Shown here: positions 1-25,016 of the stretch, piece after piece
Position numbering within the stretch: position 1 is the first letter of the stretch
How the letters are laid out: every line of letters starts with the position of its first letter
Assembly: GCF_006345805.1 (NCBI RefSeq)
Contig: NW_021833412.1
Location: forward strand, 1-25,016
Source of the DNA: Octopus sinensis
Lineage: Eukaryota
Reading direction: 5' to 3'
DNA length: 25,016 bases
Translations under genes and position numbers: made by a program
Notes under the pieces: generated by a model
What the model saw: the letters and a program-made list of their open reading frames with translations, nothing else
What the model was told of the DNA's origin: nothing
The model's database searches: none

Positions 1-174
1 GGCAGTCTTCTTCTAGTTCCAACTGACAGTCAAACAACGGCTAGTCTAGTTTGACGACTACTTTTGTGGTGCACTCAACCGAGACAGGTCTAATTCTTTG
101 AGGTAGTTACATCTTGGTTTATAAATTGACTGAAATAATGATATCGGTTTATATTAGTGGTAAATTATTAATAT

Positions 175-1480
<1,306 letters not shown>

Positions 1481-1845
1481 TGACTCGTTGTTACAATTAT
1501 TAATAATTATAGGCCGTCATCAACGCAAAAATAATGTGTCGATATCTAATTAGAGTGCACTGATGTTGCTTCAAACGTTAGATTATCGATTTCGATTCTT
1601 CACACAATCTACTATTTTCTCCAAATAATAAACCAAAACTCTGCAGAAGAGGAAAATTTGACAAATATGCAAATTTAAGTATTCAAATTAATGAATATTT
1701 CATTGAATAATTCGAATTTTTTCACATTTCTATTAAATATTCATAAAAGTCAGAAACTTTTGGTTCATTTTAATATAAATATTCTTGAAATCTAAAATCT
1801 TGGATTTACCTTGAATTGAAGCTAGCAGAATCAAAATCTCTATTT

Positions 1846-2210
1846 ACGGATACTCAATGGAGACATTTCCTTGATTTTTCGGGATCCCGCCTTTCGGGGC
1901 TAATTTAATTGCCTAAACAAATTTCCTTCCAGTGGAGAACGTCTTCAGACGTTGGTATCAAAGATCGCTTTTTGAAGGTCATCCCCGAATCAATACCACA
2001 CCACTCGGTGTTGATGTCAAAGATGTCTGTAAAGCAGGTGCACAAGGAGTTCAACAAAAGGTCCTAAGGTATCCAGTAGGAATCCTTTTAATTTTTAAAC
2101 TGGATGTTCGTAATGCTTTTAGCAGCATTCGGCGTGATCATCTCCTCAAATGTATCTATATTCACTGCCTGGATTTATTTCTACTTCTATGTTTACCCTA
2201 TGCGCCTATC
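1846..2210 (+). mobile_element. Decayed reverse transcriptase fragment of a CRE-like (RLE-type) non-LTR retrotransposon
   Basis: Frame from 1893 reads FGANLIA*TNFLPVENVFRRW...LGVDVKDVCKAG...KLDVRNAFSSIRRDHLL..HCLDLF. This matches CRE-type RT motifs GANLIAL.K/RPIAVG.TFRR, QLGVGV.GGCEA and KLDF.NAFNSIRRD. It has an in-frame stop and no YxDD region. Confidence 0.75.
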
Positions 2211-2669
2211 CAAATTAGAGTCGCATGTTGCTTCCTTTCTCTTGAACAATTTTTGTTTAACGCACATCTACTTTTTTCTTCGGTCTCCTGCTGTCAGTCT
2301 GAAAAATTCCTTTCGACTTTTTAACTTCCATGTCCCGCTCGTTGACAATGATTTTAAACACGCTTATTGATTTTGAACACGTTTAAAGGGGGAAGCTCCT
2401 AATCCGGGACAGGGGCATTGGTCTTTGCTGTTGTGTTAATTTTACTCTGCCTTGCTAACTCTCATCCGTGTTAATAATATGGGCATTCATCTTTTTTACT
2501 GCGATCTAGTTTATCAAACTTACTATTTCTAGACAGATTATTACTTATTTGACTCTAAAACTTTCAAGATTTCTACAAATTTAAATTCAAATAATTATAA
2601 AAATAATTTGTTTTATGCATTCAGTTGTATTCAATTCAGTTAAATATATAAAGTTGCCAAGTAACGTTT

Positions 2670-3722
2670 ATGAAACAGCTCTTCATTTTAATTATATTTT
2701 TTGAAAGTTGTAAATTTAATTGTATTTCAGGCTATAGGTCGTGCTTCTGCGATTGGACATTAAATTACTGTGATCATCAGTGTTGCTGTGACAGAGATTG
2801 CTCATCCGATTTGATTAACCAATACGAAAATATGGGGAAATGTTTACTTAACATGTAAAATTAATATTAACACTCCTAGAACAAGTTCATTATATTGCTT
2901 TGACAATTCTTTCATATCGTTTTATGAAGGTTTTGTGCATCAGAATAAAGGTGTATATTGCAAAGCAACACGTATTTATTATCACAAAATGTAACACAGA
3001 AAAGCCAATTGTAGACGTTTCAACTGCCTCTTGTTCCCCAACGAGCAATAATATTGCTATTCTTGAGGCATATAATTCATTAAAAAAATATTCGGAGTTC
3101 TCTCCCAAGCTTTTAAATGTAAAATAGTTTGTAATATTTCATAGGTTTACCCAAAACACTCAAATTCATACTTTTTGAATGAAAATATATCAATCATGTT
3201 TATATTATCTGCATCTATAGCTTGCGTAGAAACCAAGTTAATAACAAAACGGAATTATGCTGCAACATCAACAACATCGTAAGATTCGGGCAAAACATAA
3301 CTTATAAGTATTCTATCATAAAGCAAACCAGTAGTTGCCCGAATATAACTCCATCTTGTTTTGAGCATTGGGCTGTACTTGAAAGTCCTGGTGCAAGTTC
3401 AAGAGTTGTCACCACAAAGACATGTTCCCCGTCAGTGAGTCGTGATTTTTTATCTTTAGTGCAAGACTAGCAATAATTTAGTAATCTATATTCAAATACT
3501 TCATACATTGTCGACTCTTCAATTTGACTTTGGAGCCATTATTAGACATGTTCACGTATTTATAGACAATAACACTACTGTATGAGTTAACATAATGTAT
3601 AGAATACTCAAAAGAAAATTAATATACAATTTACGATATTAGTTCAGATCAATTATTAAGACTTAAACAAATAGAAACTAAATCATTATTGTGACTTATT
3701 TTACATTCATTGTTTTTTGTAA
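2670..3722 (+). CDS. TCTN: Tectonic-family (ciliary transition zone) protein, short, ~281 aa predicted, 9 exons
   Basis: Hydrophobic N-terminus, then CFCDWTLNYCDHQCCCDRDCS (Tectonic motif CxCDxxxxxCDxxCCCDxDC). GT-AG introns 2707-2730, 2855-2879, 2972-2999, 3119-3144, 3198-3220, 3435-3459, 3580-3602, 3642-3674 keep one frame (846 nt). The last two exons are least certain. Confidence 0.75.
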
Positions 3723-3841: not shown

Positions 3842-4172
3842 TTAATCCGGGTGGCACCTAGACCAAATTACATAGGTCTTGTTCATCCTAGGATTCGCTC
3901 ACTCAATGGACCACGTTACTCAGCCCACCTCAAAGCGAGGCAAATGCAATCCTCTTTATTGTTTGCTAACATAAGTATCCTTAAAGTCATTTCACTGTAA
4001 TCACTCAGTTCAAGTTTAATGGATTCTAAATTAGCTTTACTTTTAAATGTTACTCTCAGATTAATAATTTTATATGGAACCAAAATTGGCAAGCCGTCCT
4101 TAGTAAATCAGGCTTTTTAAGCACCTTGATTTGTCGAAATAATTTAACAATATTTAAACGAAATTGAAAAGT
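3842..4172 (-). other. Possible exon series or gene remnant of unknown product, no 5' end found
   Basis: Open frame ...LFRQIKDGLPILVPYKIINLRVTFK...CICLALRWAE with plausible 26- and 32-bp GT-AG introns. It starts at an acceptor (TAG at 4175-4173) with no nearby donor or ATG. Confidence 0.3.
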
Positions 4173-5059: not shown

Positions 5060-5645
5060 TATTCTGCGATTGTGGCCAAGTTAGTTTTCTTTGCCTGAAT
5101 GATTTGCAGAATCCAATCTTTCTATCTTTTAGGACTTTTCTTTTAAGAGAATCTGTGTCGGTCGAGTTTAACGATTTAAATAGGATGCTGAGTTTTTTTT
5201 GTTTTTTTGCCAATTTGTTTATTTCTTTGTCAAAAGTTCTCATAAATCTCCTCGGACGATTTCCAAGTACCATCTGAGTAGCCTTTTTAACTCTGATCAA
5301 AATATACTTCCATAGCAGTCCAGCAAACACATTTGAGTTAATATTGTCCAATAGTTTTCAGTATTTTCTCTTCATATTTTATATGGGTATAGTCTGAAAA
5401 ACATAGGATCTCCACGGCCAAGTTCCTGCCTTGTGTAGTAGTTGCAAGTACTCCGCAAAATCCAAAACGTTGCTTTAGAACGAGACGTGCCATCAGTAGT
5501 CGGTGATCACTGGATCATGGCACTGTATGTACAGGAGTGCGTGAGTATATCCTTCCGTGTTTGTCTGCACAGTATGTAATCGGTTTGGTTGATACAATAT
5601 TTATCTTTCATACTGGAACATTCAAGCAATTCTCTTCCAGCATAA
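5060..5645 (-). mobile_element. Decayed APE endonuclease C-terminus and linker of an RTE/L2-type non-LTR retrotransposon
   Basis: GRELLEC, NQTDYILCRQ (~5590-5561, APE 'IDYIL'), SDHRLLMARLVLK (from 5511, APE 'SDH'), then the linker LWKYILIRVKKATQMVLGNRPRR..FDKEINKL. Contains stops and frameshifts. Confidence 0.7.
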
Positions 5646-6569
5646 GTGATTCTTTTTTCTCTTTTATAATTGAAGAATTAAAAAAAAATATCAACAAATA
5701 TTTGGAATAAACGTATATTTGTTCAAAAAACATAAATTACAAAGTTTTTTAAATAATCAATTCTTATAAATTTTTAAAAACGATTCCTTAAAAAAACATT
5801 TTATTATAAGTCATTAGTTAAGTAGAAATCAGTTTTAATCCATTACTAAATATATGAAAAAGTGATAGGTTTAATAATGCAAAGACAAGAGTCGACCATG
5901 ATTGTCTGCACAATCAGAGCGGCTATTTTTTTTACTGGCAAGCTTAATTCAAAAGTCTTGAGCTAAAATATTTATAGAAAAAAAGTCAATGATTTATTTT
6001 TATTCGTTTTGATAACATATCTGATAGTTCTAAAAACTCTATTTGTGAATAAATGATCTTAAACAAACATAAACTATGCAACACCTCTGCGTTTTAATTA
6101 AAAACTGACAGAAGATAAAAAAACAATTTATTTATAATTAGAACATATTTTTGTAACATGATTTTTACTTGCAAATCAGAAACCAATTAATATCATAATG
6201 CCATTTACATCTGCTTCGATACTTGTCTAATTCAAGAATCTATTGAGAAATTAGTACTTGACAAAATGCAATGTATTAACAAAACTAGTTATCTCAGAAT
6301 GTTAAATTTTCTAACCTGCACATGATCAATTATTGAACAATTATTTATATTATTTGAAGAAATGCTAAAAGAAGGGATCATTAATGATTTGGATTGATGA
6401 GTAACATACCACTGACATAGTAAAAACAAAGTCATTGAAGAAGTCGTTACTAATAATTGCTACGAGACATTCTTTCAATAATTTGCTTTGATCTTTGTAA
6501 AGAATAATTTAATGACTGATTGCGCGAATCTAGATTATAAATTCTAGATTAGCGATAGGGAATTTTCAA

Positions 6570-7175
6570 ATGTTTAATTTTGGATATGACTTTGACAGTC
6601 TGTTTATAGACCTGCACATCCAACATTTCAACAACTTGATGTATTATTATTACTATCAGTGGATCGACAATATCAACAAAAATTTCAATCAAAAAAAGAA
6701 GGGATTTTTAATCAAAGACATTTTACCTGAACAAGATGTAAAACCGTCGAGGAATTCTATACGGATGTCAAAAAAGAAAGGCTTGAAAAATAAAGAATTA
6801 CAAAAGAAAGAATCTAAAAGCAGCACATTATTGCTATGCAGTTACTGTGGGAGAGGATATGGTTTTAAAAGTGCATTAAAGATGCATGTACAAACGCACC
6901 TTCTGCTCTGTGAATGTAAGGTGTGCGGAAAGCACTTTTCGAGGGCCTGGCTGCTGCAAGGTCACATGCGAACTCACACTGGAGAAAAACCATACAAGTG
7001 TTCTATTTGTAATCGAGCATTCGCGGATAAATCAAATCTCAGAGCTCACGCTCAAATTCATTATCGGACCAAGAAAAACATCTGTAATGTATGTGGAGAC
7101 ACTTTCTCGAGACTTTCGCAGCTGAAAAAGCACTCTCGAGTGTGCTTCCAAAATATTAATGTCCCGGAAAATTAA
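6570..7175 (+). CDS. snail: Snail-family C2H2 zinc-finger transcription factor (4 fingers), intronless
   Basis: [68 protein letters not shown] is diagnostic of Snail/Slug (FSRPWLLQGH, FADRSNLRAH). Start codon is less certain. Confidence 0.93.
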
Positions 7176-9199: not shown

Positions 9200-9485
9200 T
9201 CAGCGATTTAGAGTCATTTTCAAAGGAGAAAGTTGATAGGCCATCAGGACGCTTACCATCCTCCCGAAACAGGCCGACCAGTTCAAACTGTTTCGAGGAT
9301 CCGCTTGACTATGTCGTTTAGGGCAGTATGCTGAGGGAGGCATCCGCAATTTCTCTAGCACGATAATGTGTGAAATCCAAATGAGTCAGCGGTCGATCCG
9401 CAGCGGCACCGGTGTTACCGGCATAAGTTTAGCCGAGGCGCAATGAGAAGCCGATCCTCAGGCAATCATTGTCCAATAAGGTTCC
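9200..9485 (-). mobile_element. Decayed C-terminal fragment (CCHC knuckle + start of RLE) of a CRE-like non-LTR retrotransposon
   Basis: GTLLDNDCLRIGFSLRLG / HRCRCGSTADSFGFHTLSC / PQHTALNDIVKR / LVGLFREDGKRPDGLSTF matches the CRE-type pattern GTLLD..LR...LRLG, C.CG...D..G.H.LSC, RH.ALND, EP.GL.R.DGKRPDG. Contains stops and frameshifts. Confidence 0.85.
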
Positions 9486-12400
9486 CTGAAAAAATGAGCT
9501 CGATTGATATCACACACGTGGAGAACTGACTAGGGATCTTTATAATTACGAAAATCTGGTTGAAAATTTTAAAAAGCCAGAATAGAGTAGAAAAAAGGTT
9601 TTAGACGAGCTGTAAAAAGCGCATATTATCGAGAAATATTTCAAACTGATCCCCTGAAAAAATGAGCTCGATTGATAACACACACGTGGAGAACTGAGTA
9701 GGGATCTTTATAATTACGCAAATCTTGCTGAAAATTTTAAAACGCCAGAATAGAGTAGATAAAAAAGTTTTAGACGAGCTGTAAAAAGCGCATAATATCC
9801 AGAAATATTTCAAACTAATCCCCTGAAAAAATGAGCTCGATTGATATCACACACGTGGAGAACTGAGTAGGGATCTTTATAATTACGCAAATCTGGTTAA
9901 AATTTTAAAACGCCAGAATAGAGTAGATAAAAAGGTTTTAGACGACCTGTAAAAAGCGCATATTATCCAGAAATATTTCAAACTGATCCCCTGAAAAAAA
10001 GAGCTCGATTGATATCACATACGTTGAGAACTGAGTAGGGATCTTTATAATTACGCAAATCTTGCTGAAAATTTTAAAACGCCAGAATAGAGTATATAAA
10101 AAGGTTTTAGACGACCTGTAAAAAGCGCATATTATCCAGAAATATTTCAAACTGATCCCCTGAAAAAAAGAGCTCGATTGATATCACATACGTGGAGAAC
10201 TGAGTAGGGATCTTTATAATTACGCAAATCTTGCTGAAAATTTTAAAACGGCAGAATAGAGCAGATAAAAATGTTTTAGACGAGCTGTAAAAAGCGCATA
10301 TTATCCAGAAATATTTCAAACTAATTCCCTGAAAAAATGAGCTCGATTGATATCACACACGTGAAGAACTGAGTAGGGATCTTTATAATTACGCAAATCT
10401 GGTTGAAAATTTTAAAACGCCAGAATAGAGTAGATAAAAAGGTTTTAGACGACCTGTAAAAAGCGCATATTATCCAGAAATATTTCAAACTGATCCCCTG
10501 AAAAAATGAGCTCGATTGATATCACATACGTGGAGAACTGAGTAGGGATCATTATAATTACGCAAATCTTGCTGAAAATTTTAAAACGCCAGAATAGAGT
10601 ATATAAAAAGGTTTTAGACGACCTGTAAAAAGCGCATATTATCCAGAAATATTTCAAACTGATCCCCTGAAAAAAAGAGCTCGATTGATATCACATACGT
10701 GGAGAACTGAGTAGGGATCTTTATAATTACGCAAATCTTGCTGAAAATTTTAAAACGGCAGAATAGAGCAGATAAAAATGTTTTAGACGAGCTGTAAAAA
10801 GCGCATATTATCCAGAAATATTTCAAACTAATTCCCTGAAAAAATGAGCTCGATTGATATCACACACGTGAAGAACTGAATAGGGATCTTTATAATTACG
10901 CAAATCTGGTTGAAAATTTTAACACGCCAGAATAGAGTAGATAAAAAGGTTTTAGACGACCGTAAAAAGCGCATATTATCCAGAAATATTTCAAACTGAT
11001 CCCCTGAAAAAATGAGCTCGATTGATATCACAAACGTGGAGAACTGAGTAGGGATCATTATAATTACGCAAATCTTGCTGAAAATTTTAAAACGCCAGAA
11101 TAGAGTATATAAAAAGGTTTTAGACGACCTGTAAAAAGCGCATATTATCCAGAAATATTTCAAACTGATCCCCTGAAAAAATGAGCTCGATTGATATCAC
11201 ATACGTGGAGAACTGAGTAGGGATCTTTATAATTACGCAAATCTTGCTGAAAATTTTAAAACGGCAGAATAGAGTAGATAAAAAGGTATTAGACGAGCTC
11301 TAAAAAGCGCATATATCCAGAAATATTTCAAACTAATTCCCTGAAAAAATGAGCTCGATTGATATCACACACGTGAAGAACTGAGTAGGGATCTTTATAA
11401 TTACGCAAATCTGGTTGAAAATTTTAAAACGCCAGAATAGAGTAGATAAAAAGGTTTTAGACGACCTGTAAAAAGCGCATATTATCCAGAAATATTTCAA
11501 AATGATCCCCTGAAAAAAAGAGCTCGATTGATATCACATACGTGGAGAACTGAGTAGGGATCTTTATAATTACGCAAATCTTGCTGAAAATTTTAAAACG
11601 CCAGAATAGAGTAGATAAAAAGGTTTTAGACGAGCTGTAAAAAGCGCATATTATCCAGAAATATTTCAAACTAATCGCCTGAAAAAATGAGCTCGATTGA
11701 TATCACACACGTGGAGAACTGAGTAGGGATCTTTATAATTACGCAAATCTTGCTGAAAATTTTAAAACGCCAGAATAGAGTAGATAAAAATGTTTTAGAC
11801 TAGCTGTAAAAAGCGCATATTATCCAGAAATATTTCAAACTGATCCCCTGAAAAAATGAGCTCGATTGATATCACACACTGGAGAACTGAGTAGGGATCT
11901 TTATAATTACGCAAATCTTGCTGAAAATTTTAAAACGGCAGAATAGAGCAGATAAAAATGTTTTAGACGAGCTGTAAAAAGCGCATATTATCCAGAAATA
12001 TTTCAAACTAATTCCCTGAAAAAATGAGCTCGATTGATATCACACACGTGAAGAACTGAGTAGGGATCTTTATAATTACGCTAATCTGGTTGAAAATTTT
12101 AAAACGCCAGAATAGAGTAGTTAAAAAGGTTTTAGACGAGCTGTAAAAAGCGCATATTATCCAGAAATATTTCAAACTAATCCCCTGAAAAAATGAGCTC
12201 GATTGATATCACACACGTGGAGAACTGAGTAGGGATCTTTATAATTACGCAAATCTTGCTGAAAATTTTAAAAAGCAAGAATAGAGTATATAAAAAGGTT
12301 TTAGACGAGCTGTAAAAAGCGCATATTATCCAGAAATATTTCAAACTGATCCCCTGAAAAAATGAGCTCGATTGATATCACACACGTGGAGAACTGAGTA

Positions 12401-12697
12401 GGGATCTTTATAATTACGCAAATCTGGTTGAAAATTTTAAAACGCCAGAATAGAGTATATAAAAAGGTTTTAGACGAGCTGTAAAAAGCGCATATTATCC
12501 AGAAATATTTCAAACTAATCCCCTGAAAAAATGAGCTCGATTGATATCACACACGTGGAGAACTGAGTAGGGATCTTTATAATTACGCAAATCTTGCTGA
12601 AAATTTTAAAAAGCAAGAATAGAGTATATAAAAAGGTTTTAGACGAGCTGTAAAAAGCGCATATTATCCAGAAATATTTCAAACTGATCCCCTGAAA
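9484..12697. repeat. Tandem satellite array, 19 units of 168-169 bp plus 8 bp, with dimer/trimer higher-order structure
   Basis: Unit starts (CCCTGAAA) at 9484, 9652, 9821, 9989, 10158, 10327, 10496, 10665, 10834, 11002, 11171, 11339, 11508, 11677 (GCCT variant), 11846, 12014, 12183, 12352, 12521, with a partial at 12690. Units are highly similar and have no spacers. Confidence 0.97.
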
Positions 12698-12762: not shown

Positions 12763-14788
12763 ATGCACTCCAACTCCATCAAACTCCGCAAATTCTTTTT
12801 TCGACGACGTGACGAGTTGTGCCACAACTTGCTATCGTCGCCCGCCCTTCTGACCACCCCGGACAATGACCCTTTCCTCATGTCCACTCACGACACGCAG
12901 TCTTTGGATTACGTCACTCACCAAACAAGTCGTTACTCGTCCGGCAGTTTCGTCTATTATTTCAAAAAGTGGTCGACTCTCTTAATTCCGAGTACTGGGT
13001 ATAGACGTATTCTCGCGGTGTCCTCCCTTTATGCCCGGAATGGGGCTGTCTTCTTGTCCGGCATTTGCTTCTGCTTCCCAAACGAACTGTACAACCTGTG
13101 TGGAGGGGCACTGCATGTCATGTTCATGCCACAAGTAGTCCCCACACTCATCCCTAGGAGGTGTTCATTGTGGGCAAACAAGAGGAGGTGCTTTTGGACT
13201 GCGTGGAAGGACCCTGTTTTGTCATGTTCATGAGTGACTACACTCACTTCTTCCCACCAGTTTTGCGTGACTCTTCAATGTTAGGACTATAGCACGGATA
13301 ATATTCACGTCTGTGAGTCTTCCTACAGTCACAGCAAAAAGGAGATCAAGAAAATTAAAGTTTTCTCTCATTTGCCAACACAGAACTGGAAACTCACTCC
13401 CAAAGATGTTACATTTTCTCGGAGGAGCTCAGAATCTTCTTTTCCACGTTTTGAGTTTAATTCGACTTGCTTTCCCTACTTGTCGGACAGTCATGTTGTC
13501 CCCGACTGATTATTCCAGTTGACCATTCACCTCAAAACTGAGGAGGGAAGGAGATTCTATGCACAAATCAACTGTCCTGGTTCACTTGGACTTGTCCGAC
13601 TGGGTATGACTGGGGTGGCCATTTCAGGGAATGTCTACGCCTTCTCCAACGGGGAATCAGATAAATTCATTTTCTGCCAACAGATTTTCATGTTATTCGG
13701 TCGGGTCATTTTAGTGACGCGACTGACAAAATTGTCATCGAGGGTCTTTTCTTCGAGCCGATGCAACAAGAATTCCCCATTCCTGGCCAACCTTCGAGCG
13801 TGCATGTGGCGGTGACTACCCACCGAGTGCAATGTTTGGTTGCCTCAGTAAAGCACCGTGTCGAAGTGATGGGTGCGAATGCATTTTCGCAATGTGAGTG
13901 TGGTGTAATATTCCAGTCAGGACAACCGAGGTGCCCAATGCCCGTGTTTTCGTATGTCGTCATTCCATGGACAGTGAACGAGGACTTGTCCCTCTTTCAG
14001 CCGACTACCAACTCCCCAAAGCATTTCCCCATTCTCCATTTGTAGGTGTTTGGTGCAGCACAGAATAAGTCCTACAGAGAAGACGAAATCCTCCACTTTG
14101 GGGAACCATTCGACCTGGCAGTAAGTCCGTCCATCATCTGTCAGCAATTCACGGCGAGCGACCAATACGGTGGGACGTGTTTTCTGGGGAATCCGTACAG
14201 TCACCAGCTGTATGGCAAATATCCTGATATTCCCAATTCCTTCATTGCAGATGCCACTTTTAGAGAAAAGAAGCGGCCAGGGCGGAAGGTGGGGAGTTTT
14301 ATGAATAGTCGTATTAGAGAAAAGTAGTCGATTTGGGTGTTTCATTGCATCCGGCCAACTCGAGGAGTACTGATGCTATCCCACATGGGCATTTCTATTC
14401 CGGGAGGCCCTCGACCGTCGATCCTCAAAGGCATCCTTTCCCACGACGTGCCCCCGAAACATCACGTGACTCCCCCTCATTCACAGTGAACAAGTGCAGA
14501 AGAACCAGACCCAGTCATTGGATATTTATGCAAAGTAGGTTTATTCACTTTCCCAGGTTTATTGACATGATGAAAAGTAAACGAAAACACATGAGTGACT
14601 GGGATCTCATTAGGAATTTCGACACCAAGTCAATCAAGTCCCCAATCGACATGCATAAGGCAAAAACGTGGTTGCGTGAGGATATTGATGGAATAAGTGA
14701 GCGGGAGATCCTCCACAAGTTGATTGAATATCGCAAGCAACTTGTTAAAGACTCTCTTGAGATTGCAGCTTCCATTAATAAAATGTGA
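12763..14788 (+). CDS. Unidentified multi-exon gene; 5' and 3' ends uncertain
   Basis: Successive ORFs link in frame through typical tiny GT-AG introns (e.g. 13604-13627, 14121-14144, gttattcggtcgggtcattttag, gtggggagttttatgaatagtcgtattag). Splicing around 13230-13290 could not be resolved. No family recognised. Confidence 0.6.
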
Positions 14789-14900
14789 TTTGTCCATCTA
14801 CTCTATTTAGACGTGTGGTAGCAAATTGTTCATTCAATTCTGTAGGGGTCTCAATTTATATTATTAAAATATTTAAATTGCATTAAATATTATTAGTCTA

Positions 14901-17900
14901 ATGGTGAATGCTGATTTCATTAAGAGAAAACATCGCCCTCATATCTGCATAAAATGTTCTCAAGATGTGCATCCTCTGTTGATGACCACCCCAAGCCTCC
15001 TGTTCGACCAACAAGTTAACCATCATTTCACAAGTGTCCGCCACATTGATGTGTAGTGTCCATTCGGGATGTCTCAATCCCAAACATGTGCTTTCATTTC
15101 GACGAATTGGGGAATAGTGGACCAGGACAATTCATGGACGTGGTTCCTTCGATCGTGTCGAGTTGCATGTCGAGTGACTGTCCTGACATGTTCATTGAGT
15201 GCGCCAATGCATTGTTCGACACAACTGACAAATTGGACTTTGAGTTCTTCGGGAGGTTTGTGGGAGGTTTGGGGAGTTGACCATTGAAAGTGATATTCGT
15301 CACCACCTCCCTTCACTCCAACACACAAACCATCGACAAACTCAAGGAAATGACTAAGGATGTGTACGAGTCGGGGAATTTGATCAGTCCGGGAATTCCC
15401 TCGACCTACATTATACTCATCCCACCACACTCCACTCACTCCCCCACTCTCCTCCACGCTGTTTCATATGTTTTTGGAGACGTCCACTTAATCGGTGCCT
15501 CGGTAATCGGCCTGATTATACTCCAGGACTGTTCTCTGTTTGGGGACCTGTTCTCTCGCTTTGCCCACTCACAGATCCTCCCTTGGCTGGAAAAGGAGTT
15601 CGCTGCACTCTCTTCCGTGCTAGCAGGGCGGAGGGGATTCCAGAAATCAATCATCACTGCTGCCAAACGATTTTTTTCCCCGTCCAAAACTGTTTTGGGA
15701 TCAGTGCTGACTGAGTCGGGGATTACTCGGGCAATGTAGCACCAACTGCCTCACTCCCAGTTTCCCCCCTCAGTCCGACGAGATGCGCCTCAAAAAATGG
15801 GCGGACTTGGCCTTCTCCTTCCAAATGTATTCATTGGCCAACGAGGCCTACGCCTTTCTCCGCAAAGACTTCCACGAACAGCGCTGTTGGGCGCAGTACG
15901 CCCACGTGCAGGAGATGCACGGACTGTCTTCATTCCTTGCCCCCGAACTGCCCTATTCCATCGAGTCCTCCGTGCTGGCCTGTTCCTGCTACATGAACAC
16001 CTGCAAGTGTGCCCACCCCTCTATTCAGGGACTTCCGGCGAGCATTCCGTGCGATGGTGTACCGGCTGCTCTGCGCCTCCCCCGATGACCTCGTCGTGTT
16101 CTCCAGGGAAATGCAGTTGCTCATAGAAATGGTACTGTCCCCGTTATATTCCAGAGTGACAATTTTTTCATTACTGCCCTCCTCTCCCGACAGGTGGCCC
16201 TTCTCTGGCGACAATCCTTTCCACGTCGGACTGCCAAATACTTGTTCCACATGATGAGTGCTGCTTTCGGCTTCAAACAAATCCACTTTTCCGTTCGACT
16301 GTGTGCTCTACGTCTAGGAACCCCTGGCGAGACACATTTTGTCCGAACTGTACTATATTACTCCCTCCACCTGGAAGTTCATTGGGGTGTGTATTCTGAC
16401 TCATCGGTAGAAGGCAGTCACTGCTAATTATGTCCGTCTGGGAAACTGTGAGGCCACGCGAGCCCGTCTCTACGCTCGCCTGATCGAGTTTGGGGGGGAA
16501 AACACGGACTGTCAATTCGAGTACTTGCGGGAACTGACAAAGATGATTGTGTCCATGGAGGATAAACCATTGACGAGTCTCCTCTCCATCCAACTCGAGG
16601 TGGTCGCATATCTCCATTCCTTCGATAGTTTGCTTAATGTCCTATTCCAGCTTACAGGGCGTCCTTCTCTCCAGCCACGGTAGACGTGTTGACAGACTTA
16701 AAAGAGAGTGTCTACCAACACTACGTTGGACTTGGAGGTGGCGGTGTGACTTTGTGTGATTCGGGGATTGGATCACGGTGCGAGAAGGGGGTCAGCATAG
16801 GACTGGGAGGTCTGTGTTTGTGCTGAGTCTTAGAGACTGTCTTTATATTGGGTAAACTACACAACAGCATTGGTGTGTCCTACGAATATTGTAGTGTGAG
16901 GTTGGACTGGGTATTGGAGAGTGGGGGTGGGACGACCACCTTTTCCTTCCCCTCTCCCACGTCTCGACAGGTGATGGAGGGAGTGGACTCGATTCGACTC
17001 GAGGCAGTGACATCCGACTGGGTGCACTTTAGACTGAGTGTATGTCCACTCGTCGTCGGGGAGTACTCACTCCAGTCCATTTCCTGCCAAGTGAGGGGGA
17101 CTGCTTCATTTGGACGATCCACCGAGTGGGTGCCCGTCTGTCTGCCTGTGTGTTCTCTATTCCTCCATGTGATTGACCCAATGCCTCTCCTCCGAGTACT
17201 ATTTCATATCGAGGCAGGTTGATGTCGATGTGGCTGATTTGACACTCCACGTGGGGGAAATTGGGTGTTTCACGTGCCACCTCACCAACATTGGGGGAGA
17301 CCGGCTGATCTCTCCACTCAAAGTGTTCTCACTGCATCCCCACATTTGTCAACCTGATGGACACACCTCTCAAGATCACGTCGAAATTGGCCAATCACTC
17401 GCACAAAACGAGTCATTCACGACGACATTGCACTTGGGCCATCCTCAAATGGATAAAATGTGTGTTCTGTTCGCATACCAGACGAGCACACCCAAATTGT
17501 ATGTCCTTGTGTTATACATAGAATCCGCACTTCGTGTATTGTCGTCAACCTCCATCTCCTGTCCAGTGTGTATTCCAAACTTGTCTGTCATATGTCGACT
17601 CCCCCCCAATGTGCTGTTGTCGTCCAAGTGGATGTCCCCCTCTCTTTAGTATTCTGGTTGGCTGCATACTAGTTTGTGTACACACCATCTTCGGTTATGT
17701 GTTATTCACACTGTTTGGAACTGGATCGTGTTGTGTGTCCTCTTCGGAGTGTATCCAGGGGACAGTCCTTGTCGATGGTCCTCTATTTCAACCTAATCAA
17801 CTCTCCCAAGTTGGAATGGTCGAAAGCATTGATTGCAAGTCATACATCCGAGAGTTGGGAGGAATTGTTTTCCAAATATGCAAGCAGGGAAATCCACAAA

Positions 17901-18443
17901 ATGGGGAGTGTCCCGTGGAGTACTCGAGTGGAATTGCTCACTATTCAATGGAAAGTATTCGCCCACTACTATTTGTAGGCCTCCAAAGACGGGATTGACA
18001 TTGCTGGCCAGAATTACCTAATCCCCCCCTCCACTAATGGTGTTCCTCCCCTCAAAGTTGAGGTCATGTGTCCCCCTATTGTCAATCACGATTTTAACGT
18101 GTCCAAGTTGAGATGACTGACTACTGGCAGGTCGTGCATTGTGCCCGTCGGCTGTCTTCTTCATAATAGTTCCCACAGGACGGCCACCGTCGTCGTATCT
18201 GTAGATCGTGGACGTATGAGGTATGCATTGCGTGTCCTATTCCACAGGCAATATTTTTGTTTTGGGAATGCCACAGTCCGGGTTATAGTCGAGCCTCATT
18301 CTTCCGCTCAGTGTGAGTTCCATTTCATGTTTCTGCGTCCTGGTTCCTTTTGTCTTGATTGCCTCTCGGTTACCTGTGACAACCATTTTGACGGGTTCTC
18401 TATTTCCCCATCTAACCATTATATATCCATTGCTGTACCGTGA
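14901..18443 (+). CDS. TRAPPC8: Trafficking protein particle complex subunit 8 (Trs85)
   Basis: QILPWLEKEFAALSSVLAGRRGFQKSIITAAKRFF (cf. LPHIEK.IRQLNDQL..RKGLSRSLFSATKKWF), FPPQSDEMRLKKWADLAFSFQMYSLA..AY..LRKDF (cf. ELQIRKMADLCF..Q.YDLAY..Y..AKKDF), AKYLFHM, and FEYLREL. Many 22-25 bp GT-AG introns (15034-15056, 15267-15290, 15736-15760 etc.). The 3' exons were not all traced. Confidence 0.88.
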
Positions 18444-19190: not shown

Positions 19191-20095
19191 TTGTGTTGTG
19201 CGTTATGCTCGAACTTTAATCCAATTATATCGCCAGCGTCAATCGTCCGAAATACCACAAACTGTTCTCTTTATGCCTCACCTCCCTTAATGAGATATTT
19301 TGTTCCTGCAGGAAAATATAAAATAAACGCCAGTTCATTGTCAGTTTCTGGGAAAACAAATGTACAATGTAGTCATCGTCATCAAGCCGAGAAATTCGTC
19401 ACAAAGAAGTACTGCGTTTTATTAGACCATTTCCTAATAACATCATTTTCGATAGATTATTTGTCCGAGGAGGTGCCACTCCTTTAGTCTCCTCAGATCT
19501 CTCTTGTTTGGACTATTGTCAGTTATTCATCCAGTTTCCTTGTGTACTCTCTCTGAACCAGTATTCTATCATGTTGTTATGTGTGAAAGGAATTCATTTC
19601 AAGCAGATAATAAACATTAAGACACAGGTGGACAGGGAACTTGCTTTGAAATGTGGCGAGAATATGCAGTATTAAAACCCTTCCTGAAGAAGTGAACTCC
19701 TTCCTGTTTCTTTCAAAAAATTGTTAGAATCACTTGACTACTTAAAGGATACATGGCAAGTCGTTGATCTGGAATGTCTTCTGTTGTAGGTTAGGACAGT
19801 TTGTGCAAGAATTGCTTAACTCTCTGTATATTCAGGGTACAACAAATCTGGGCATTTCTCCAAACAATTCACAATCCAGTAAACTCGATTTTTTTCAGAA
19901 AGTAATTTTTCCATGTGGTATATTCGGCACATTCAGGAATCCGAGTACACGTCGTTTTTGAATTCGTCCCACTTCGAGACGAGTAGTGTCATTGGGGCCC
20001 TTGAAAGGATGATTAAAACACCTGGGAGGGAAACTGTGTGGTTGCTCAAGAGGATCACACTGAAGAAACTGTTTAGCTATCCGCAGCACGGCTGA
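19191..20095 (+). CDS. Probable unidentified multi-exon gene
   Basis: A stop-free frame at ~19373-19675 joins the 19191 ORF via a 29-bp GT-AG intron. The last exon (19938-20095) follows a good acceptor. The minus strand is closed by many stops here. No homology recognised. Confidence 0.4.
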
Positions 20096-20341
20096 TTCTC
20101 CACTCTTGGAATGAAGACTGCACAATTAATATACTATCGGGATTAGTGCTCTCAAAAATATCGAGCACCCAAATCTATTTTCTGTAAGATTTTAAAGCCT
20201 TTTATTAAAAAATAGCGCATTTAATTATTTTTTTCTAAATTTAAGTCAAAACAAGAAACAACTTTTATCCCAGTGGGTGTATTGATGTGGGCGCACTTAC
20301 AATATAATTGAGATTTATAGAATGGTGCCTAATTGCTAGAC

Positions 20342-21284
20342 ATGTCGCCCGGTTTGTTGACGAGCGTCCTCAGTGTCAAGAAGGAGCTGGATGCATTAAT
20401 GGAGGATGGCGTGATGGTTTGGTGGAGTAATAATAGCAGGACGACGGAGGCATAATCATTCTGCTGAGGCAATTGGAAGGACTGGCACTCACCCTCGACA
20501 TTTTGGCCGTATGCCCCTAATTGACTACTCACAGAAAACTAAAATTGGCCTGACTGTGAATAAGATCCGGAAAAAGTCGGAAAATGGGGAGATTTCGTCG
20601 CTCTCAAAGTCATTGATTCAGAAATGGAAGAAGCATTTAAACTGCGAACCAGCAAAGGAGATGCAGCCCGACCGACTGTCCCCCACCGACGACCCAACTC
20701 GGATTAAGTGTAGGTCAATGCTGCTGGATGCCCTGAGTGGGGGGACTGTGCGGGAACCCCATTGGGAGGACATTGCGGCAATGATCGAGGAGGATATCCT
20801 TTTTTATATTCCCACCTTCTCCTGTAGTCTCCTTAACTCACTCATTCACAAATCTTTGTCAACCACAAGTCGCGCACTGATTCGGCCTACAAAACACGAA
20901 TTCGGAGTCGTGTCATGAATTTGAAGGACCCCAACAACCCCGAACTGCGGAGGAATGTCGTGTCGATGGTCATTTCCCCCGCCAAGTTCGCCAGCATGAC
21001 CACCGAGGTTGGTCCCCCTCTAATCCCCAGGAAATGGCCAACGACGAGTTGAAATCCCTGGTAGTCCAATTGACGAAGGACTCCATCAACAAATCTCAGT
21101 TGGCGGTGACCACGGGGACACACACCACCCAAATTAAGTGCGGCAAGTGCAAACAAAGCGACGTGTTGTACAACCAGCTGCAGACACGGAGTGCAGACGA
21201 GCCAATGACCACCTTCTGTCTTTGCAATGCTTGTGGTGCTCGCTGGAAGGTTCACACATTTTTATTCAACTCCAGTTCTGCTAA
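20342..21284 (+). CDS. TCEA1: Transcription elongation factor S-II (TFIIS), 6 exons, ~262 aa
   Basis: [81 protein letters not shown]. Introns: 20417-20439, 20509-20534, 20794-20849 (AT-AC), 21008-21030, 21250-21275. Exons total 789 nt, in frame. Confidence 0.96.
20794..20849 (+). other. U12-type (minor spliceosome) AT-AC intron, 56 bp
   Basis: 5' site ATATCCTT, branch point TCCTTAAC at 20830-20837, 3' end CAC. Removal gives [18 protein letters not shown] and restores the TFIIS frame. I found no GT-AG solution. Confidence 0.92.
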
Positions 21285-21504
21285 GAGGCATATTACTGGC
21301 ATCCTTTTCTAGTAACTTGTTCAACCTTTATTATGAGGGCAGTCTTCTTCTAGTTCCAACTGACAGTCAAACAACGGCTAGTCTAGTTTGACGACTACTT
21401 TTGTGGTGCACTCAACCGAGACAGGTCTAATTCTTTGAGGTAGTTACATCTTGGTTTATAAATTGACTGAAATAATGATATCGGTTTATATTAGTGGTAA
21501 ATTA

Positions 21505-22816
<1,312 letters not shown>

Positions 22817-23181
22817 TGACTCGTTGTTACAATTATTAATAATTATAGGCCGTCATCAACGCAAAAATAATGTGTCGATATCTAATTAGAGTGCACTGAT
22901 GTTGCTTCAAACGTTAGATTATCGATTTCGATTCTTCACACAATCTACTATTTTCTCCAAATAATAAACCAAAACTCTGCAGAAGAGGAAAATTTGACAA
23001 ATATGCAAATTTAAGTATTCAAATTAATGAATATTTCATTGAATAATTCGAATTTTTTCACATTTCTATTAAATATTCATAAAAGTCAGAAACTTTTGGT
23101 TCATTTTAATATAAATATTCTTGAAATCTAAAATCTTGGATTTACCTTGAATTGAAGCTAGCAGAATCAAAATCTCTATTT

Positions 23182-23546
23182 ACGGATACTCAATGGAGAC
23201 ATTTCCTTGATTTTTCGGGATCCCGCCTTTCGGGGCTAATTTAATTGCCTAAACAAATTTCCTTCCAGTGGAGAACGTCTTCAGACGTTGGTATCAAAGA
23301 TCGCTTTTTGAAGGTCATCCCCGAATCAATACCACACCACTCGGTGTTGATGTCAAAGATGTCTGTAAAGCAGGTGCACAAGGAGTTCAACAAAAGGTCC
23401 TAAGGTATCCAGTAGGAATCCTTTTAATTTTTAAACTGGATGTTCGTAATGCTTTTAGCAGCATTCGGCGTGATCATCTCCTCAAATGTATCTATATTCA
23501 CTGCCTGGATTTATTTCTACTTCTATGTTTACCCTATGCGCCTATC
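23182..23546 (+). mobile_element. Second copy of the decayed CRE-like RT fragment
   Basis: Same sequence as 1846-2210. Confidence 0.75.
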
Positions 23547-24005
23547 CAAATTAGAGTCGCATGTTGCTTCCTTTCTCTTGAACAATTTTTGTTTAACGCA
23601 CATCTACTTTTTTCTTCGGTCTCCTGCTGTCAGTCTGAAAAATTCCTTTCGACTTTTTAACTTCCATGTCCCGCTCGTTGACAATGATTTTAAACACGCT
23701 TATTGATTTTGAACACGTTTAAAGGGGGAAGCTCCTAATCCGGGACAGGGGCATTGGTCTTTGCTGTTGTGTTAATTTTACTCTGCCTTGCTAACTCTCA
23801 TCCGTGTTAATAATATGGGCATTCATCTTTTTTACTGCGATCTAGTTTATCAAACTTACTATTTCTAGACAGATTATTACTTATTTGACTCTAAAACTTT
23901 CAAGATTTCTACAAATTTAAATTCAAATAATTATAAAAATAATTTGTTTTATGCATTCAGTTGTATTCAATTCAGTTAAATATATAAAGTTGCCAAGTAA
24001 CGTTT

Positions 24006-25016
24006 ATGAAACAGCTCTTCATTTTAATTATATTTTTTGAAAGTTGTAAATTTAATTGTATTTCAGGCTATAGGTCGTGCTTCTGCGATTGGACATTAAA
24101 TTACTGTGATCATCAGTGTTGCTGTGACAGAGATTGCTCATCCGATTTGATTAACCAATACGAAAATATGGGGAAATGTTTACTTAACATGTAAAATTAA
24201 TATTAACACTCCTAGAACAAGTTCATTATATTGCTTTGACAATTCTTTCATATCGTTTTATGAAGGTTTTGTGCATCAGAATAAAGGTGTATATTGCAAA
24301 GCAACACGTATTTATTATCACAAAATGTAACACAGAAAAGCCAATTGTAGACGTTTCAACTGCCTCTTGTTCCCCAACGAGCAATAATATTGCTATTCTT
24401 GAGGCATATAATTCATTAAAAAAATATTCGGAGTTCTCTCCCAAGCTTTTAAATGTAAAATAGTTTGTAATATTTCATAGGTTTACCCAAAACACTCAAA
24501 TTCATACTTTTTGAATGAAAATATATCAATCATGTTTATATTATCTGCATCTATAGCTTGCGTAGAAACCAAGTTAATAACAAAACGGAATTATGCTGCA
24601 ACATCAACAACATCGTAAGATTCGGGCAAAACATAACTTATAAGTATTCTATCATAAAGCAAACCAGTAGTTGCCCGAATATAACTCCATCTTGTTTTGA
24701 GCATTGGGCTGTACTTGAAAGTCCTGGTGCAAGTTCAAGAGTTGTCACCACAAAGACATGTTCCCCGTCAGTGAGTCGTGATTTTTTATCTTTAGTGCAA
24801 GACTAGCAATAATTTAGTAATCTATATTCAAATACTTCATACATTGTCGACTCTTCAATTTGACTTTGGAGCCATTATTAGACATGTTCACGTATTTATA
24901 GACAATAACACTACTGTATGAGTTAACATAATGTATAGAATACTCAAAAGAAAATTAATATACAATTTACGATATTAGTTCAGATCAATTATTAAGACTT
25001 AAACAAATAGAAACTA
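24006..25016 (+). CDS. TCTN: Tectonic-like gene, second copy, cut by the window end
   Basis: Same sequence as 2670-3680. Confidence 0.75.

Follow-up and report, generated by a model that had tools for sequence, protein, structure and literature searches.

A predicted U12-type AT-AC intron in a TFIIS gene whose other introns are ultrashort

Minor splicing relies on cooperative recognition of an intron's donor and branch site by the U11/U12 di-snRNP, with U4atac/U6atac.U5 completing catalysis. The closest described relatives of the intron reported here are found in vertebrate genes for the transcription elongation factor TFIIS. TCEA1, TCEA2, and TCEA3 of human and mouse are minor-intron genes with ATATCCT donors (Olthof et al. 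2019 supplement, PMC6717393), and the donors of all of them are given there as ATATCCTT. The minor intron of human TCEA1 is listed with the junction AAG/ATATCCTTT and the branch site TTTTCCTTAACG (PMC6717393 supplement). A preliminary description of the present DNA had named the vertebrate TFIIS/TCEA genes as hosts of AT-AC introns, and that background was correct because TCEA1, TCEA2, and TCEA3 of human and mouse appear in the PMC6717393 supplement; we also verified an AT-AC intron in frog TCEA2.

A second point of comparison is the compact genome of the stramenopile Blastocystis, in which hundreds of minor introns, mostly of the AT-AC subtype, have a mean length of ~42 nt and a median of 39 nt (Larue and Roy 2023, PMC10639083). 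The same pan-eukaryotic survey found that the lengths of minor and major introns are correlated between species (Spearman 0.90), and that introns of <30 nt are dropped by standard pipelines (PMC10639083). Animal introns of <30 nt are reported only from myxobolid myxozoans and Dicyema (PMC13644364). Our search of a literature library for U12 introns in dicyemids found no paper.

The TFIIS gene and the signals of its AT-AC intron

The window, which is the whole stretch of 25,016 nucleotides analysed here, carries a TFIIS gene on its forward strand. The gene model was assembled from the three-frame forward translation (from 20343), over whose frames the coding sequence was scattered. The features of the gene are as follows.

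20342-21284, plus strand: TFIIS (TCEA-like) gene of 6 exons and 262 aa, assigned by Pfam domains and homology
20342-20416, 20440-20508, 20535-20793, 20850-21007, 21031-21249, and 21276-21284, plus strand: TFIIS exons
20417-20439, plus strand: U2-type GT-AG intron of TFIIS, 23 nt
20509-20534, plus strand: U2-type GT-AG intron of TFIIS, 26 nt
20794-20849, plus strand: predicted U12-type AT-AC intron of TFIIS, 56 nt, phase 1, placed by frame, conserved residues, and matching ortholog position
20794-20802, plus strand: 5' splice site ATATCCTTT, the U11/U6atac recognition motif, an exact minor-class donor consensus
20830-20837, plus strand: branch-point sequence TCCTTAAC, the U12 pairing motif, an exact consensus with its second A at 20836
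20847-20849, plus strand: 3' splice site CAC, whose AC (20848-20849) brings the coding sequence back into frame
21008-21030, plus strand: U2-type GT-AG intron of TFIIS, 23 nt
21250-21275, plus strand: U2-type GT-AG intron of TFIIS, 26 nt

The reading frame started with an ATG at 20342 and closed with a TAA ending at 21284. The product contained the full domain set of the family, namely a Med26-type N-terminal domain (Med26, E = 1.5e-13), the TFIIS central domain (TFIIS_M, E = 7e-34, 117.1 bits), and, at the C-terminus, a zinc ribbon carrying the acidic RSADEP loop (Zn_ribbon_TFIIS, E = 1.2e-17). A homolog search placed it at 44-55% identity to metazoan TFIIS, and the Cys4 of the zinc ribbon and the RSADEP loop were invariant in a four-way alignment. 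All five introns occupied positions common to frog TCEA2 in the alignment, which backs the TFIIS model as a whole.

The full sequence of the intron at 20794-20849 was ATATCCTTTTTTATATTCCCACCTTCTCCTGTAGTCTCCTTAACTCACTCATTCAC, with the layout ATATCCTTTTTT...TCCTTAAC (20830-20837)...CAC. Its donor matched the extended U12 consensus /RTATCCTTT and was identical to that of human TCEA1 (PMC6717393 supplement). The distance from the branch adenosine A20836 to the intron end at 20849 was 13 nt, within the ~10-15 nt expected of U12 introns, and no AG occurred between the last in-frame stop (TAA, 20834-20836) and the return of conserved coding sequence. The termini, AT...AC, are one of the two types allowed for U12 introns (AT-AC or GT-AG). 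By all sequence criteria the intron is classed as U12-type, and the exact minor-class donor, branch site, second A at 13 nt from the end, and CAC named in the preliminary description were all confirmed.

We found that the frame shifted into stops when 20794-20849 was retained. Since the rest of TFIIS was intact and conserved, this segment must be spliced out. Every frame-restoring GT-AG, GC-AG, AT-AC, and mixed pair was enumerated. The GT-AG and GC-AG alternatives either deleted conserved TFIIS_M residues or kept intron-derived ones, and the block they damaged was the conserved region around ...IF.....YK.RIRSR. Their TFIIS_M scores fell to 79.8-90.2 bits versus 117.1 bits for the AT-AC model, a loss of 27-37 bits. 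Removal of 20794-20849 was the only splice that preserved both the frame and all conserved TFIIS residues, as the preliminary description had proposed from the frame.

The same enumeration bears on the reading that the motifs are chance matches and that another non-canonical splice is used. The donor motif by itself lends this reading something, as RTATCCTT was not enriched in the 25 kb window (4 occurrences versus 2.2 expected from shuffles). The branch motif TCCTTRAC occurred once on either strand versus 1.8 expected from shuffles, and that sole copy, on the strand of the donor motif, started 36 nt downstream of the start of ATATCCTT, at the required intron site. From the motif densities, the joint chance of donor, branch, spacing, frame, and ancestral position was estimated at ~1e-8. 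This joint estimate and the domain score lost by the alternatives make chance matching extremely improbable.

A relaxed scan of the window for arrangements of donor, branch, and acceptor returned no second convincing case. One further U12-like candidate, of the GT-AG type, was considered on the minus strand at 19752-19704, with GTATCCTT at 19752-19745. It read GTATCCTTT, with ATTCTAAC 22 nt further on and an AG after that, at 19710 or 19704, which would give 43 or 49 nt. It was rejected for its poor branch motif and lack of a gene model; Pfam gave no match there, and the HMMER matches of the neighbouring ORF at 19898-20125 were translated tandem repeats with scores inflated by repetition. The RTATCCTT motifs at 3975 and 5547 were likewise set aside, having no credible branch site or gene model.

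Orthology of the minor intron across animals

The genomic loci of three homologs were fetched and their exon junctions located, and the spliced junctions translated to the annotated proteins. The introns at the corresponding position are listed below with that of the window.

This window, 20794-20849: 56 nt, phase 1, ATATCCTTTT...TCCTTAAC...CAC
Pelobates fuscus (frog) TCEA2, 15842-16025: 184 nt, phase 1, ATATCCTTTC...CCCTTAAC...CAC
Haliotis (abalone) TFIIS, 5439-6420: 982 nt, phase 1, GTATCCTTCC...TCCTTAAC...TAG
Ephydatia (sponge) TFIIS, 1724-2050: 327 nt, phase 1, GTATCCTTTT...TTCTTGAC...TAG

In the four-way alignment of window, frog, abalone, and sponge, the split codon fell in one column for all four sequences. 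The distance from branch to 3' splice site was similarly short in the three orthologs. The alignment of position and phase with vertebrate TCEA that had been suggested as a check thus came out in favour of identity (same column, phase 1, checked in frog TCEA2). On this alignment the intron at 20794-20849 is assigned as orthologous to the vertebrate TCEA minor intron. It shares with the intron of TCEA1, TCEA2, and TCEA3 the gene family, alignment column, phase 1, ATATCCTTT donor, TCCTTAAC-type branch site, and AC acceptor. It differs from them in length (56 nt versus 184 nt in frog TCEA2 and 438-3511 nt in human, PMC6717393 supplement) and in its host genome, which has U2 introns of ~26 nt. The Haliotis and Ephydatia introns agree with it in position, phase, and U12-type donor and branch site, but have GT-AG termini and lengths of 982 and 327 nt, whereas the window's intron is AT-AC as in vertebrates.

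The orthologous intron in sponge TFIIS indicates that the intron predates the sponge-bilaterian split. TFIIS of Drosophila simulans (TfIIS) and Daphnia magna was uninterrupted at the site. Since both arthropod genes were uninterrupted, the intron was lost there by deletion and not by conversion to the U2 type.

These comparisons also bear on the reading that there is no intron, in which the 56 nt would be coding sequence or an insertion and the break in frame an assembly or sequencing indel, or the mark of a decaying pseudogene. Signs of assembly redundancy are present, the window ends being 99.9% identical copies. Against this, the 56 nt had no counterpart in any TFIIS homolog, and with them removed the alignment was gap-free over the junction. 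The bounds of the segment coincided exactly with the ancestral intron position and carried exact U12 signals, and the remaining gene structure was intact, with start and stop in place and neither the other exons nor the four GT-AG introns disrupted. We regard the no-intron reading as highly improbable. What was observed directly for 20794-20849 is its signals, its orthology, and the need to remove it for the frame; the segment is very probably a genuine U12-dependent AT-AC intron, the ortholog of an ancient metazoan TFIIS/TCEA minor intron.

Neighbouring genes, intron sizes, and affinity of the source

Several other features were recognised in the window.

1-3680 and 21338-25016: direct copies, 99.9% identical (3 mismatches and 1 indel over 3680 nt)
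175-1480, minus strand (ATG 1480, stop 175): MAPKAPK2/3-like kinase gene, 352 aa, nine GT-AG introns; second copy at 21512-22816
2672-3470, plus strand, second copy at ~24008-24806: signal-peptide-like start, then CxCD...CDxxCCCDxDC
6534-7172, plus strand: ORF with four C2H2 zinc fingers
9484-12697: satellite array, 19 copies of a 169-nt unit with 94% match, between the putative Snail-type gene and TRAPPC8
~14300-18440, plus strand: large gene resembling TRAPPC8/Trs85, one ORF of which matched Pfam TRAPPC-Trs85 with E = 2.4e-14

The end repeat had a period of ~21.3 kb, its second copy started just downstream of TFIIS, and the kinase gene was contained in both copies. Tandem duplication of a large segment, read-through of a circular molecule, or tandem assembly of haplotypes could each account for the copies. 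The kinase product was 55-60% identical to animal MAPKAPK2 in a homolog search. A homolog search with the concatenated TRAPPC8 sequence gave no match; this gene was detected by Pfam only and is strongly diverged. It lay inside a GC-rich stretch (44-52% at 13000-18000, versus 29-43% elsewhere in the window). The zinc-finger signature of the ORF at 6534-7172 is one that we take to be typical of the Snail/Scratch family. The sequence at 2672-3470 scored 20.8 bits, narrowly short of the 22-bit cut-off, against the DUF1619 N-terminal domain, which belongs to the Tectonic family of the ciliary transition zone.

The preliminary description had stated that the other introns are GT-AG and nearly all 22-35 bp long. 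This held for the 13 other introns that we verified, four in TFIIS and nine in the kinase gene (27, 28, 24, 24, 35, 26, 25, 26, and 32 nt): 13/13 were GT-AG, with lengths of 23-35 nt and a median of 26 nt. The AT-AC intron, at 56 nt, was accordingly about twice the local U2 length, which had also been proposed. Little was conserved in the local U2-type donors past the GT. Dicyemid introns are alike in being ultrashort, with a median of 27 nt (PMC6543705), and in having donors with little beyond GT, their 5' boundary signal being the weakest known (PMC2483917). The local lengths agree as well with the reported restriction of animal introns of <30 nt to myxobolid myxozoans and Dicyema (PMC13644364).

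Homolog searches with TFIIS, the concatenated TRAPPC8, and the kinase returned neither a self hit nor a close relative, the best matches being generic bilaterian and cnidarian proteins at 44-60% identity, so that the protein collections searched contain no protein of the source, transcript-derived ones included. The window had a GC content of ~38%, versus 36.7% in D. japonicum and 29% in Henneguya. It was repeat-rich, and its kinase and TFIIS were moderately conserved. The Tectonic-like match, if real, argues for a ciliated animal over a myxozoan. Intron size, GC, repeats, moderate conservation, and the possible Tectonic-like gene fit a dicyemid-like spiralian better than a myxozoan, and we favour that source, short of proof, also because minor splicing is reported as lost in Myxozoa (PMC10639083). 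If the source were a myxozoan, the TFIIS minor intron would contradict that reported loss.

Minor splicing and the length of the intron

The preliminary description had concluded that this animal keeps a functional minor spliceosome. The part of that conclusion that stood is that a retained, working minor spliceosome is the best, though indirect, explanation of the intact signals and the orthology; no gene for its RNAs or proteins could be added to it from the window. An Rfam scan (E<=1) of the window gave no U11, U12, U4atac, U6atac, or other snRNA gene, and no minor-spliceosome protein gene was present in the 25 kb. Because these genes are absent from the window, we infer the machinery, and with it the actual excision of 20794-20849 and the presence of minor snRNPs in the organism, from the intron itself. 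The same intron occurs in TFIIS of sponge, abalone, frog, mouse, and human, which makes it very probable that minor splicing still works here. Its 17 perfect signal bases, set against the nearly unconstrained U2 signals and the diverged TRAPPC8, point to ongoing selection by a working minor spliceosome.

The proposed sequence of events starts with the joint binding of donor ATATCCTTT and branch site TCCTTAAC by the U11/U12 di-snRNP. U11 would then be replaced by U4atac/U6atac.U5, and excision would occur at the AC that lies 13 nt past the branch adenosine. Joining of the exons would make the Glu codon G/AA and lead to full-length TFIIS. In evolutionary terms, the genome has reduced its U2-type introns to ~26 nt with degraded signals; the TFIIS minor intron has retained all of its minor-class signals and has become no shorter than 56 nt.

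It is conceivable instead that the minor snRNPs were lost and that the minor-class sequence was kept, with removal now carried out by the major (U2-type) spliceosome or a hybrid pathway. Fast-evolving animals have lost the minor spliceosome, among them nematodes, myxozoans, oikopleurids, and tardigrades (PMC10639083), and a window without a minor snRNA gene in the Rfam scan agrees with such a loss. The signals themselves speak the other way, since 17 bases would not stay perfect where TRAPPC8 is barely recognisable, and the length of 56 nt lies outside the 23-35 nt range of the U2 introns nearby. It is also generally known that neither U1 nor U2 pairs with ATATCCTTT or TCCTTAAC, that AT-AC introns of the U2 type have U2-like donors, and that minor introns are deleted or converted once their machinery is lost. 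We therefore consider removal by the major spliceosome or a hybrid pathway quite improbable, and the preferred reading remains excision by a minor spliceosome.

The suggestion that U12 splicing might reach its lower size limit at 56 nt did not hold, as the minor introns of Blastocystis have a median of 39 nt (PMC10639083) and one intron sets no limit. Blastocystis resembles the present case in having mostly AT-AC minor introns in a compact genome, and differs in being a stramenopile with hundreds of them, versus one animal intron of 56 nt here. A short minor intron in a genome of short introns fits the trend of the length correlation. A lineage-specific floor on U12 intron length could exist within animals. 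Doubtful, and put forward only tentatively, is the claim that no minor-class intron had been documented before in any animal lineage whose introns are ultrashort (<30 nt), and that the U12 minimum in this lineage is about twice the U2 length. If this were true, that minimum would reveal a physical limit on how short a bridge the U11/U12 di-snRNP can form between donor and branch site.

The class of the intron, its host gene, and its mechanism are well known, and its survival is of the expected kind with no new mechanism, so that the gain is incremental. What makes it interesting is how it differs from the ultrashort U2 introns around it. Gene prediction that does not allow for AT-AC termini would break the TFIIS gene, and the intron offers a concrete test case for the shrinkage of U12 introns in an animal. 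Together, our results suggest that one of the oldest minor introns of animals, present in sponge and human alike, has survived here with its signals perfect, and that even extreme miniaturisation of introns, with the U2 signals almost wholly eroded, does not by itself eliminate minor splicing.
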